Source: Salisapilia sapeloensis CBS 127946 (lineage: Eukaryota > Protista > Oomycota). From it: a DNA stretch of 64,000 nt. The notes under the pieces are model-generated. The model did no database searches. It saw nothing but the letters and a program-made list of their open reading frames with translations, and had not been told where the DNA came from. Of the stretch, positions 16,016 through 23,359 are shown piece after piece. A program made the position numbers and the translations under genes. The stretch's first letter is position 1. Every line of letters starts with the position of its first letter. The stretch covers positions 1 through 64,000 of the forward strand of contig JAADVB010000061.1 of the NCBI GenBank assembly GCA_023334545.1, in the 5' to 3' direction.

Positions 16016-17638
<1,623 letters not shown>

Positions 17639-17824: not shown

Positions 17825-19303
17825 CTAGGAGAGAAAGGTGGCGCGAACAGCGTCCGGGACGTCGATGCGGAGGTCTGCGGCCATGGTGTCTTGACCGACG
17901 TCTCGACGGCAGCTCCATCCGCCGTCGTTCTTGGCGTCGTAGCGACTGTGCAGGGCTTCAAGCGTGGCGAGGAGACTTGCGGGGGCTTTGCTCTGCTCAG
18001 CAATGTCGAGCACAGGGCCATATCCGATCGAATCGGCTGGATCGAGGCCGTGGGAAGAGCTGTTGAACCCTAGAATGTTCGAACCGCTACTTTGTCCTAG
18101 CTTAACGATCTCTTCCATCGCCGCCCACTCGCCCACTCGTGCCAACGTCAACAAGAGCGAGTACAAGTATCGTTTATCATCTATCTGGAACGTCTGTCGT
18201 AACGCGGATGGTTTCGCCGACAGCCTCTCGTCCTTAATCTGCGCTCGCTTATCTTCCTTGCGATGATACAGGAAGCAGTAGAGGAGAAAGCGGCGCATAG
18301 GCATGCCCAGCACATTCTGCCGCGGGTACGTCGTCCACACAGGATCCATACTCAGTCTCTTGATATTCGCCTGTAGTGCTTCCTGCCACTGTCGCTGCGT
18401 CTCTGGCGTCGCAGCATCCAGCACCAGTCCTTCCGGACCATCTCCGATCTGGAGGCAGTACGGACGCTTGCTAAACTTGCCAGAGTAGTCAAACTTACTT
18501 ACAGGTAGATTCCGTACGAGCCGAACGTTTCCTTTCTGCCTTTTATCCATGAACGGATTCTTATGATGTTTCTGCAATCGCTCTGCATCGTGTTTGGTAT
18601 AGATGAGCTCCGTCGCATCGAGTTGAAAGTACCTCATGCGCCAATTCGCTTGGAGCGTATTCACCTTGCGTGAACGTTTATCCAAGTACCCAGACTTAAA
18701 GACTGCTGGTGGTGCTGCATCTGCATCCTGTTTCTCTGTCGTTAGCTGTAGTTCACTTAGTTGCATGTACTCAGCAAGAGATTCCATGACCCACGGAGGG
18801 ATACGATGTCGATAGTGTTCTAAGATCGCAGCGACTTCCACAGCGACCGAGAGAGATTGTTCAATCGATCGTTCACGTAGGACTAGAGATAATAGTAAAG
18901 ACGCTAGATCTTCATATCGGCGTGTAGCGAGGAAGAGATCGAGGGTTCCTCGTAGCGCATCAAGCGAAATCCGATCGTTGTTCACGATACAGAGCTCCGA
19001 CTGGTACGCAATCCAGTGATCCATGGCTACATGTGTACGTGAGAGTTCTTGATGAAACACTGCAGGCGCCATGGTGTGATACAGGAACAGTAGTACGTCC
19101 ATAATGACGCCAGAGCACCCGGTCGCTTCGGCTGCACGAAGGAGGTGCGCCTTGGCCCGGAGAGATCGTAGATTAAGTGTGTAGAGGTCAGCATAGTCAT
19201 ATACGAGAGGGGTGTCATCTAGCTGATTATCAGCGTCTTCGAGCCCCAAGTGCCGACGCAAGAGCTGCGCCACGACCGCATCCGGGTCTGTCTCCTTGGA
19301 CAT
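17825..19303 (-). CDS. VIPAS39: SPE-39/VIPAS39 (VPS16B)-like protein with an inserted PH domain
   Basis: [62 protein letters not shown] and [10 protein letters not shown]..SKAP match VIPAS39 blocks recalled from memory; PH domain at aa ~201-316 ([24 protein letters not shown]). Confidence 0.75.
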   Translation of the reverse strand: [492 protein letters not shown]

Positions 19304-19386: not shown

Positions 19387-19760
19387 ATGGAGCGACAGTT
19401 TAAGATCAAAGTCGGGACGCTACGTCGGTACGTCTGGACTTTAAGTAGACTGTAGACGTAGATGCTGATGAAAGTGGTAGTGTTAGCAAGGATTTGGAGT
19501 ATTATGTGAAAGAGCGAAAGGAGCAGCAGGACCGGATTGATCGGATGAGGCAGGAAGGGGCGGACGAGTATGATATCAAAAAGCAGGAAGAAGTGCTTGC
19601 AGAGACCGATACGATGCTACCGGAAAGCCAGACGAGACTGCATGATACTGTGCGTGATGTCACAGCGTTTTTGCAGGATAATAATGAAGAGATTCAGGAT
19701 GAAGAGCTCAAGCAGCAAGCGCAAGCATTGGTAGAGGCCGCACAGACTTTGCTCAAGTAG
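19387..19760 (+). CDS. TBCA: Tubulin-specific chaperone A
   Basis: Exons 19387-19427, 19481-19760: MERQFKIKVGTLRRVSKDLEYY...EYDIKKQEEVLAETDTMLP. Confidence 0.93.
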
Positions 19761-20425: not shown

Positions 20426-23359
20426 ATGAGCAACTACTTGTATCGACTACTCCTCGTTATCCTTTGTACCTGCTCATTGCCCGTGCATGGTGCCAATTGG
20501 GCACAAGTTAGTGGCACGAGGTACACGAATGCTGTCGCGTTGGACAAGACGCCGTGGAGAGCTCGACATGGACACTCGGCAGTCGCGCTCGACTTTTCAG
20601 ATGAATACATCGAAGAAACAGGAAAGCTAGGTCGATTGTTTGTGGTCGGCGGAGACTCGAGTGTTCAAGGTGACCAAGACCTTCGTGCATATCCTGGAGG
20701 CGGGTCTTTGCGTAACGACGTCTGGGCTACAACCGGTATCACGTGGTCGATTCAAACGAGTCCACTGAAGACAACAAAGTGGGGTGATCCATTGCCACGG
20801 ACTATCGCGAACATGACTTGGCTGCAAACAAATCCAGGAAAGCGACCACCACGAGGTATTACCTACCCGGAATGGATTGCATGTGCCTTTGCACCGTGGG
20901 CACAATTTCCACCCAAAGGGTGTGAGGATCCTTCCAAGCCACCTGGAGCCTACCTTGCAGACAACATGTTCTCACCTAGACGTAACTTTGCCACTGTAGC
21001 ATTCAATAAGGAGATCTACGTCATTGGAGGTAGAGCTCGAGAGCATATACCGCTACCCCAGACTGATCTTCGTGGCGGTGTTACTGGATGGCAGGTCAAT
21101 ATGTCCACTGAAGCGAAAGTCGCTAATCTTTCTCGAAATGTACGTTGGAGGGAGTATACGGTCCTCAAGAATGATGTCTGGAAGAGTAAGGACGCTGGTG
21201 CTTCCTGGACATTGGTCACACCTGGATGCTTCATGCCTCAGGCAAACCTGGTGCACAAGGCTGGTGACCGGTTCTTCCAATGCATTGACGACGACCAGTG
21301 TGAAGGCGATGCTTCGTGTCAATTTGCTAGTGCTAGCGCGAGTCTCGGAGTATGTATCTGTAAAATGTGGTCACCACGCGAGTTCCACGCAGTAGCAATC
21401 CACGATAACGCTTTCTATCTTACTGGGGGATATGCTGCAGTGCAGCTAGGAAACTGTGGTGTCGAAGAGTGGGCACGTACGAGGGAGCCAGGAGAAGAGT
21501 TTGCTTGTGGAGGTGGCTATCGAGCATATATGAACGACGTATGGAAGTCTACAGATGGAGAGCATTGGAAACTATTGAAGCTTGAAGCTCCTTTTGCTCC
21601 AAGAGGTGAGCATACGCTATCATCCTTTCGATCGTCAATGTACTTGATGGGAGGTAGAACTGGCATTTCGAAAAGCACGAATGGTAACTCAGAGACAGAA
21701 GCTTTGCTAAACGATATGTGGGTCAGTGAAAATGGCATCGACTGGAGTGAAGTAACAGACGCAGTGCCTTGGTCAAAGAGAGCGAAGCATACTGTCCTTG
21801 TGCTACCTGGATCCACTGATCCGTCTTCCGGAGAGGATGTAGAGGATCAACTACTTTTGTTTTTTGGTGAAAATGAAGAACAAGCTCTTGGAGATGTTTG
21901 GATGTGGAAGGGAGAAGGCTCAAATTGGAATCAAGACTACTCTGCTGATACGGAAGTCGCAAAGTATGTCACCCCCTCAAGTAGCATCCATTTCCTGCGT
22001 GGCATCACATCAACGCACGTTGCTACTCTCCAGTCTGTCGGTTTGAATCGCATTGAGCAGCTTACGGATATTGACTTTGATCTTACTATCAAGCTACGTA
22101 ATTTCATGCCGATATGTGACTACATTGCGTTGGCACGAGTCATTTTGAAGACTTGCACGGTGACGACGGACGTGTACGAAGGACAGGAGTATGCAGATAT
22201 AGAACTAGTACAAGGGAAGAGTGGTACAGCGGCAAAAACCGATGCCAATACCGACGAGATGACAGAGGACAATTGGGACGGTTGTACACACCTTGGTGCT
22301 CAGTACCTAGATCCGAACACAAACCGGTGGGTCTGGCCAGATGTGAAAGGCATCGATCAAGTCGATACTCTCCGTGATATATATGATGACGCACAAGAGA
22401 CGATCTGTCGCTGGCATCCTGTTTCTCGAACAGGACATGCAGCAGCGATCTTTAAGCGCAAAGTCTTTGTCTTTGGAGGTCTGACTGCGCCTGATTATTA
22501 TGAGAATGACGTTTGGTATCGCATTGATCGACGTCCTCAAGCTCAATTTGTGACTGTCCCTCGACCTTCGAGTTCAGATACCACTTTTACGTTCCGTAGT
22601 GATGCAGAAGGTGTCGTGTTTGAATACCACGTGCTCAATATAGTCGAGCAACTTGTGGTGCGAAACTGGACCAAGGTATTGGATACGGTGGACTTTGAGT
22701 CATGGCTCGATCAAGGAACGTACAGGTTCCGTGTTCGAGCGGTGGATCCAGCTGGCAACGTCGATGCTACTTTTGAAGCTGGTCGAAACGAGTACGAGTG
22801 GACCTATGTGCCCAAGTTGCCATGGGGACTAATCATGGGGTTACTAAGCTTTGTTCTGGTGATTATCATGGGCGTGATCATGGAAATAAGGAAGCGTCGT
22901 AAGCGTGCTGCAATGGAAAGATACGCTATGAAACGCATGCGCCGGAAACTCAAGGGAAAGAAGAAAGGAGCGGAGACGGATCCGAATTGGCGTGAAACGT
23001 ACGATAAGGCAAAAGACAAGAAAGCAGTGAAAAAGCGTACGAAGCTCATTGGTGGGAAGAAAGTAGCTGCAACAAAGAAGAAGAAAGAGGACAAGGTAGA
23101 CAAGAAGAAAGATAAGAAAGATAAGAAAGACAAGAAAGAGGAGAAGAAGAAAGTAGATAAAAAGAAAGCGGACGACAAAGGAAAAAAGAAAAAGAAAGAG
23201 GAAAAAGTAAAGAGTGAAAAGACGAAAAAAGAGACCAAGGACAAAAAACCTTCGAGTAAAGTCAAACCAACGAAAGAAAGCAAGAGCAAGAAGAAGGAAG
23301 AGAAAGTCAAAGCATCGACGAAGAAGCCAGCATCCCCTAAAAAGAAAGGCACCAAATGA
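20426..23359 (+). CDS. Type I membrane protein: signal peptide, Kelch repeats, Cys-rich insert, Ig-like domain, TM helix, Lys-rich cytoplasmic tail
   Basis: Six Kelch-like blades (RHGHSAV, RRNFATV..YVIGG, REFHAV..YLTGG, RGEHTL..YLMGG, RAKHTV, RTGHAA..FVFGG); YRFRVRAVDPAGNVD; TM WGLIMGLLSFVLVIIMGVIM; poly-K tail. Confidence 0.85.
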   Translation: MSNYLYRLLLVILCTCSLPVHGANWAQVSGTRYTNAVALDKTPWRARHGHSAVALDFSDEYIEETGKLGRLFVVGGDSSVQGDQDLRAYPGGGSLRNDVWATTGITWSIQTSPLKTTKWGDPLPRTIANMTWLQTNPGKRPPRGITYPEWIACAFAPWAQFPPKGCEDPSKPPGAYLADNMFSPRRNFATVAFNKEIYVIGGRAREHIPLPQTDLRGGVTGWQVNMSTEAKVANLSRNVRWREYTVLKNDVWKSKDAGASWTLVTPGCFMPQANLVHKAGDRFFQCIDDDQCEGDASCQFASASASLGVCICKMWSPREFHAVAIHDNAFYLTGGYAAVQLGNCGVEEWARTREPGEEFACGGGYRAYMNDVWKSTDGEHWKLLKLEAPFAPRGEHTLSSFRSSMYLMGGRTGISKSTNGNSETEALLNDMWVSENGIDWSEVTDAVPWSKRAKHTVLVLPGSTDPSSGEDVEDQLLLFFGENEEQALGDVWMWKGEGSNWNQDYSADTEVAKYVTPSSSIHFLRGITSTHVATLQSVGLNRIEQLTDIDFDLTIKLRNFMPICDYIALARVILKTCTVTTDVYEGQEYADIELVQGKSGTAAKTDANTDEMTEDNWDGCTHLGAQYLDPNTNRWVWPDVKGIDQVDTLRDIYDDAQETICRWHPVSRTGHAAAIFKRKVFVFGGLTAPDYYENDVWYRIDRRPQAQFVTVPRPSSSDTTFTFRSDAEGVVFEYHVLNIVEQLVVRNWTKVLDTVDFESWLDQGTYRFRVRAVDPAGNVDATFEAGRNEYEWTYVPKLPWGLIMGLLSFVLVIIMGVIMEIRKRRKRAAMERYAMKRMRRKLKGKKKGAETDPNWRETYDKAKDKKAVKKRTKLIGGKKVAATKKKKEDKVDKKKDKKDKKDKKEEKKKVDKKKADDKGKKKKKEEKVKSEKTKKETKDKKPSSKVKPTKESKSKKKEEKVKASTKKPASPKKKGTK

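Follow-up and report, generated by a model that had tools for sequence, protein, structure and literature searches.

What kind of protein is encoded by a gene of the oomycete Salisapilia sapeloensis in which a PH domain interrupts a helical scaffold, and how might such a protein reach its membrane? The gene lies at 17825..19303 on the minus strand of the window analyzed here, that is, the first 64,000 nucleotides of contig JAADVB010000061.1 (strain CBS 127946, assembly GCA_023334545.1). An earlier note, made from the DNA letters and their translations, had read the product as a stramenopile version of the animal protein VIPAS39 (also called VIPAR, SPE-39 or VPS16B), and not of VPS16, split by an inserted PH domain; the stramenopile placement fits, the organism being an oomycete. 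VIPAS39/VPS16B is a short, propeller-less paralogue of VPS16, the subunit of the HOPS and CORVET complexes whose helical C-terminal domain holds the Sec1/Munc18 (SM) protein VPS33; VIPAS39 is itself a subunit, with VPS33B, of the CHEVI complex and is mutated in ARC syndrome (arthrogryposis with renal dysfunction and cholestasis). Our results support the assignment of the S. sapeloensis protein to the VIPAS39/SPE-39 (VPS16B) family, on the strength of profiles, signature residues and architecture. On balance, we also favor the whole explanation in which this family member carries a PH domain in a loop, pairs with an extra VPS33 and docks on membranes through lipids.

The gene is a single uninterrupted open reading frame with an ATG start, zero internal stops and a stop codon at 17825-17827 (-), and it encodes 492 amino acids (aa) in one exon; orthologues of equal length and layout occur in Pythium, Globisporangium, Phytophthora and Aphanomyces. 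The protein falls into an N-terminal helical block (aa 1-198; 18710..19303, -), the inserted PH domain (aa 199-317; 18353..18709, -), which comprises a beta-sandwich at 203-296 and a C-terminal helix at 300-317, and a C-terminal helical block (aa 318-492; 17825..18352, -) that is ordered to about aa 458. Pfam recognizes the PH domain (PF00169) at aa 201-314 with an E-value of 1.6e-8 and 35.4 bits, against a gathering cut-off of 25.1 bits, in agreement with the position given for it in the earlier note (nt ~18703-18356). The Vps16_C match is weak (aa 367-410, 18.4 bits, under the 21-bit cut-off), and Pfam finds no Vps16_N, i.e., no N-terminal beta-propeller, in the 492-aa protein. When the protein was searched against PDB sequences, PH domains were the sole matches.

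Word-indexed homology searches with protein and alignment queries yielded, among the matches listed, peronosporalean oomycetes only, and the nearest relatives (41-53% identity) were, again among the matches listed, all from the oomycetes Globisporangium, Pythium and Phytophthora. Because the candidates in these searches were filled with other word-sharing proteins, probably PH-domain proteins, an exhaustive profile search was needed; a query profile of 16 oomycete orthologues was run against 1.84 billion representative proteins and gave 213 significant matches. This search recovered more remote orthologues in Aphanomyces and, after the oomycetes, about 100 proteins without a PH domain; these are 400-560 aa long and align with two stretches of the profile (~39-197 and 318-468), which together cover all of it except the PH domain. 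Annotated animal proteins are among them: Pycnogonum VIPAS39 (6e-16), Branchiostoma SPE-39 (3e-15) and Anneissia SPE-39 (1e-8). A Vps16_C match with E up to 0.001 is present in 66 of the 82 aligned family members, and no canonical, Vps16_N-bearing VPS16 occurs among the best 150 of the 213 profile matches. Long matches of 700-970 aa had at first been taken for canonical VPS16, a reading that was rejected when Pfam found no Vps16_N in any of them.

The target was also compared with the VPS16 of the same organism. We searched the S. sapeloensis assembly (22.4 Mb in 1365 contigs), whose proteins are absent from the protein collection, and found a single canonical VPS16 on contig C537, an 877-aa open frame with Vps16_N and Vps16_C domains scoring 151 and 154 bits; Vps16_N was found on this contig only, and the genome search revealed no second VIPAS39-like gene besides the target. 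The contrast that the earlier note had suggested as a check, VIPAS39 versus VPS16 in hidden Markov model (HMM) searches, came out in favor of VIPAS39 in two forms, both non-circular in that the models were built without oomycete rows. With an HMM from 67 non-oomycete family rows, the target scores 133.5 bits (in stretches 44-197 and 318-447) versus 47.8 bits for the S. sapeloensis VPS16; with an HMM from three annotated animal proteins, it scores 55.5 bits (2.3e-13 for a nominal one-million database), and the VPS16 gives no match. Conversely, in a small local set searched at E<10, the oomycete profile does not detect this VPS16.

Individual residues point in the same direction. K51, P327, Y342, Y346, H347 and P365 are found in the target and are shared by at least 91% of the non-oomycete members, and the S. 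sapeloensis VPS16 has a gap or another residue at all six positions; the family signature of the C-terminal block consists of P327, Y342, Y346-H347, P365 and W393. Over match columns, the target shares a median of 21% identity with the non-oomycete family and 13% with the S. sapeloensis VPS16. Identification of the target as canonical VPS16 was accordingly rejected, given its lack of Vps16_N and a Vps16_C score of 18.4 bits, below the cut-off and far from the 154 bits of the genuine VPS16.

A predicted structure was compared with known ones. The AlphaFold2 (AF2) model, made with an 82-row alignment (predicted local distance difference test score 88.3, predicted template modeling score 0.81), is helical at 7-196 and again at 321-458, and between these parts it has, by DSSP, a beta-sandwich with a C-terminal helix (203-317). 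Foldseek of this model against the PDB returned PH-containing chains only and no Vps16. In an exhaustive VIA search, the top match was 4kmo_B, the Chaetomium Vps16 C-terminal domain crystallized with Vps33 (Z 14.8, root-mean-square deviation 3.6, 245/265 residues aligned), and it covers model residues 2-462 and thus spans both sides of the PH insert; the next Vps16 was 8dit_B from the HOPS core (Z 13.6). For helical proteins, Z values of this size are no proof by themselves, but in the present case they are consistent with what the sequences show. The model therefore supports, as a prediction, that the helical blocks of the target adopt the fold of the Vps16 C-terminal domain that clamps Vps33. 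Taken together, the profile search, the HMMs, the signature residues, the absence of a propeller and this fold support the view that the protein belongs with VIPAS39 and not with VPS16.

Where the PH domain sits can be read from the PH-less relatives. The gap between their two matched stretches amounts to 0-12 residues where both reach the junction (for example, 409 to 415 in relative P0029 and 377 to 378 in P0053); the stretches are thus nearly contiguous, and the PH domain therefore sits in a loop. In an 82-row MAFFT alignment, nearly every printed row without a PH domain has 0-1 residue in the columns of target aa 199-317, Pycnogonum (11 residues) and P0062 (20 residues) being the exceptions. 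The proposal that the PH domain replaces a loop of the animal protein is hence confirmed as to the insertion, but the loop is mostly 0-1 residue and so shorter than the ~10 residues given in the earlier note. All six collinear motif blocks that had been matched to human VIPAS39 strings do align with the SPE-39/VIPAS39 proteins of Branchiostoma, Pycnogonum and Anneissia and with protist relatives, with 4-11 identities per block of 14-22 residues, the human strings being compared indirectly via these other animal orthologues. BLASTP of the target against Branchiostoma SPE-39 gives two collinear high-scoring segment pairs (E 3e-9 and 4e-5).

The target resembles animal VIPAS39 in its size (~490 aa), its composition of a Vps16 C-terminal helical domain with no beta-propeller, its conserved blocks and its signature residues (K51 and the C-terminal set), although it has the 119-aa PH insert and an identity of only about 20%. 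In the 493-aa Anneissia SPE-39, the position of the insert is between residues 314 and 316, target aa 39 aligns with residue 165, and residues 165-314 correspond to the N-terminal block of the target. Across the animal proteins, target aa 39 aligns with residue 134-208, so that just 38 residues precede the domain in the oomycete protein; the animals' disordered, low-complexity N-terminus of 130-200 aa (human aa 1-152), a typical animal feature rather than a demonstrated mark of the family, is absent. For human VPS16B, it has been reported that residues 143-316 are required to form a complex with VPS33B and that residues 1-152 are unstructured (PMC10208892). Target aa 1-198 would roughly match this VPS33B-binding segment, an approximate mapping that assumes similar numbering in proteins of equal length. 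If the numbering is indeed similar, the target retains the SM-binding segment, dispenses with the disordered N-terminus and bears the PH insert at the segment's C-terminal edge.

As to a possible SM partner, the genome offers several candidates. It contains six Sec1-family genes (L002-L007), and three of the six proteins, L005, L006 and L007, are VPS33-type by best PDB match. L005, with 354 bits to human VPS33A, is the canonical VPS33; L006 scores 155 bits to Chaetomium Vps33, and L007 reaches 121 bits with human VPS33A. Five Phytophthora proteins (P0195-P0199) group with L007 in a clade (support 100/99) that excludes L005; oomycetes thus conserve a second VPS33 paralogue, which answers in the positive the earlier suggestion to look for one. 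A homology search with L007 returned the five Phytophthora proteins only, with no animal VPS33B among the matches; L007 may nonetheless be a VPS33B orthologue. L006 (L006:1078-3411:+ on contig C470) is a divergent 777-aa Sec1-family protein whose best PDB match is Vps33 (1.7e-44); a further SM gene, L002, is located on this contig at a distance of about 5 kb. In the ESM Atlas, L006 is found near plant clusters named 'VPS33B family' and 'Sec1 family domain-containing'; on this Atlas lead, it may be an SM protein of the SCFD2/MIP3 type. A further entry, P0201 (Phytophthora citrophthora KAK1929502.1, 1149 aa), is labeled 'cystathionine beta-synthase' and yet shares a 90%-identity cluster with P0198, the second VPS33 paralogue; two neighboring genes have probably been fused in this gene model.

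The PH domain itself has the appearance of a lipid-binding module. A K-Xn-(K/R)-X-R motif marks lipid-binding PH domains, and the target has a candidate lipid-head-group motif of this type, K209-x12-R222-x-R224, from strand beta1 to strand beta2 (18632..18679, -). K209, R210, R212, W221, R222, R224 and Y235 do not vary among the 16 peronosporalean orthologues, and R224 aligns with the second Arg of the NWKRRYF segment of TAPP1. The insert matches many PH structures with Z 12-14, among them Grp1 (14.1), TAPP1 (13.9), SKAP55, ARAP3 and DAPP1 (Z 13-14). Compared with the 3-phosphoinositide-binding domains of Grp1, TAPP1, DAPP1 and ARAP3, with which it shares the fold and the basic beta1/beta2 motif, the target PH domain differs in having a longer beta1-beta2 loop and in being embedded within another domain instead of lying at a terminus. 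The shared fold and motif suggest that it may bind phosphoinositides.

We propose the following mechanism. The helical scaffold would bind an SM protein, for which the second VPS33 paralogue (L007, or the P0195 type in Phytophthora) is the most probable candidate, to give a two-subunit, CHEVI-like fusion module. The PH domain, via its conserved basic K-Xn-R-X-R pocket, would then dock this module on an endosomal or post-Golgi membrane marked by phosphoinositides, and this docking may serve in place of the animal proteins' long disordered N-terminus and their Rab-dependent recruitment.

Maximum-likelihood trees of 92 and of 36 rows gather all PH-bearing oomycete proteins in one clade (support 100) and put this clade inside the VIPAS39-like family; a holozoan clade has a support of 99, and the rest of the backbone is without resolution. 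The only outgroup in these trees is the S. sapeloensis VPS16, on a very long branch. A phylogeny with VPS16, which the earlier note had also proposed, thus places the oomycetes within the family but leaves the root unsettled, and the family assignment therefore rests on the evidence from profiles, signature residues and architecture.

Several observations weigh against the explanation that we favor, and they are best considered together with the alternatives to which they lend substance. With regard to origin, the oomycete proteins could be an independent, truncated and fast-evolving duplicate of their own VPS16 that converged on the VIPAS39 layout, and hence not orthologues of animal VIPAS39. 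In an approximately unbiased (AU) test on 36 rows with the one canonical VPS16 as sole outgroup (P0125, P0136, P0067, P0084, P0115 and most animal rows were left out), a constraint joining the oomycete clade with the S. sapeloensis VPS16 costs 5.0 log-likelihood units and is not rejected (p-AU 0.177), and the clade sits on a long stem of 1.5-1.7 changes per column. We nevertheless regard this origin as very unlikely. The target is more distant from its own VPS16 than from the typical non-oomycete VIPAS39-like protein, it has the six family-specific residues that VPS16 is missing, the oomycete profile overlooks VPS16 in the local set, and no Vps16_N protein enters the best 150 matches from 1.84 billion sequences; furthermore, Platysulcus, which is also a stramenopile, possesses a PH-less member, which implies that the ancestor already had one. 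As for the integrity of the gene, the PH segment could in principle be a separate gene or the product of a mis-assembly that fused two genes, an outcome the earlier note had itself raised. We found no point in favor of this idea, to which we assign next to no probability, and it was rejected: the frame is continuous, the layout of helical block, PH and helical block recurs in more than 20 independent oomycete assemblies, Aphanomyces included, and the AF2 model combines both helical blocks into a single Vps16-like domain from which the PH domain loops out. Pfam finds the PH domain in 16 of 16 aligned orthologues (and Vps16_C in 9 of 16, best E 1.1e-6); since the segment is kept, in frame, in every oomycete orthologue found, it is part of the gene and not an artefact of assembly.

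The proposed partner and the proposed ligand are open to other readings. The target could belong to the VIPAS39 family without pairing with the extra VPS33, and could work with VPS45 in a FERARI-like manner, with canonical VPS33, or alone as a PH-targeted adaptor. Family membership does not fix the SM partner; animal FERARI papers list VIPAS39 with VPS45; there are six SM proteins in the genome to choose from; and the ESM Atlas leads for L007 and L006 fail to separate VPS33A from VPS33B. Against this, the scaffold matches the domain by which Vps16 binds Vps33, the counterpart of human VPS16B's VPS33B-binding segment is kept, and the conserved second VPS33 paralogue of oomycetes would otherwise be left without an explanation, so that we consider a different partner, or none, rather unlikely. 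The PH domain, in turn, might have a role other than lipid sensing, either binding proteins (a small GTPase or a SNARE, for example) or controlling SM binding as a structural plug. Among PH domains, there are many that bind proteins, or whose binding of lipids is only weak; the ArfBD of ARHGAP21 and the Ral-binding PH fold of Exo84 are among the structural matches; the SM-binding segment has the insert at its edge; and the basic motif is weaker, being partly degenerate, in Aphanomyces. The invariance of K209, R210, R212, R222, R224 and Y235 in the peronosporalean orthologues, the ranking of the 3-phosphoinositide binders Grp1, TAPP1, ARAP3 and DAPP1 as best structural matches, and the presence of a second, unrelated PH domain on the same scaffold in Paulinella (see below), which argues for membrane targeting in general, make such a role appear unlikely to us.

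Returning to the VIPAS39-family assignment, its members extend well beyond animals and oomycetes. The profile search recovered Platysulcus (4e-27), Rhodelphis, Plasmodiophora, Paulinella and Mantamonas, as well as the dictyostelid Tieghemostelium and the choanoflagellate Salpingoeca punica, and the VIPAS39-type scaffold is, as judged from such sequence matches, spread across most eukaryotic supergroups. Peronosporales and Saprolegniales have the PH domain and the stramenopile Platysulcus is without it, a distribution best explained by insertion of the domain into one surface loop within the oomycete lineage; this is a component of the whole explanation, in which we place somewhat better than even confidence.

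In Paulinella chromatophora, the member P0125 (EukProt EP00457_P002163, 816 aa) likewise joins a PH domain to the scaffold, with PH at aa 31-127 (Pfam 4.3e-11) and the VIPAS39-like region at about aa 271-744. Its PH domain is at the N-terminus and not in the loop, is unrelated in sequence to that of oomycetes and goes unrecognized by the oomycete PH profile. These features suggest that PH was joined to the VIPAS39-like scaffold twice, the Paulinella fusion having arisen independently in Rhizaria.

VPS33B and VPS16B have been stated to be metazoan-only (PMC10208892), and it has been written that 'metazoans additionally possess VPS33B' (PMC6005816); in surveys on the evolution of tethering complexes, CHEVI parts outside animals go unmentioned. 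The range found here is wider than the metazoan-only statement. Because members occur in Holozoa, Amoebozoa, CRuMs, Rhizaria, Stramenopila and Rhodelphis, the VPS16B/VIPAS39 scaffold with a CHEVI-type SM module may date to early eukaryotes, with oomycetes having rewired recruitment by a phosphoinositide-binding PH insert alongside a second VPS33 and Paulinella having done so independently by an N-terminal PH domain; we offer this scenario tentatively, as one that falls a little short of an even chance. What can be said is that oomycetes, which include major crop and fish pathogens, carry a VPS16B-type scaffold with a built-in PH domain together with an extra VPS33. Should these two proteins form a complex, CHEVI would be an ancient trafficking module that could be studied in simple organisms, and the oomycete form, if the mechanism is true, would be a natural experiment on membrane recruitment by lipid instead of by Rab and a disordered tail.

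The results also provide a concrete annotation for oomycete proteins that source databases now label just 'PH domain-containing' or 'hypothetical'; the Plasmodiophora member is named 'Vps16 C-terminal domain-containing' in its source database. Another accessory-domain variant of the VIPAS39-like family is P0080 (644 aa, in the holozoan clade), in which N-terminal tetratricopeptide repeats (TPR_2, 4.7e-15) are fused to the VIPAS39-like domain (Vps16_C, 1.2e-15).

In the window, the target gene adjoins an adenylosuccinate synthetase gene with a long N-terminal extension (16016-17587, -). On its other side, a small open reading frame at 19494-19760 (+) encodes tubulin-binding cofactor A (Pfam TBCA, 1.3e-19) and is divergent from the target gene, the two start codons lying about 190 bp apart; it is followed by an open reading frame at 20426-23359 (+) for a 977-aa protein with a Lys-rich tail.

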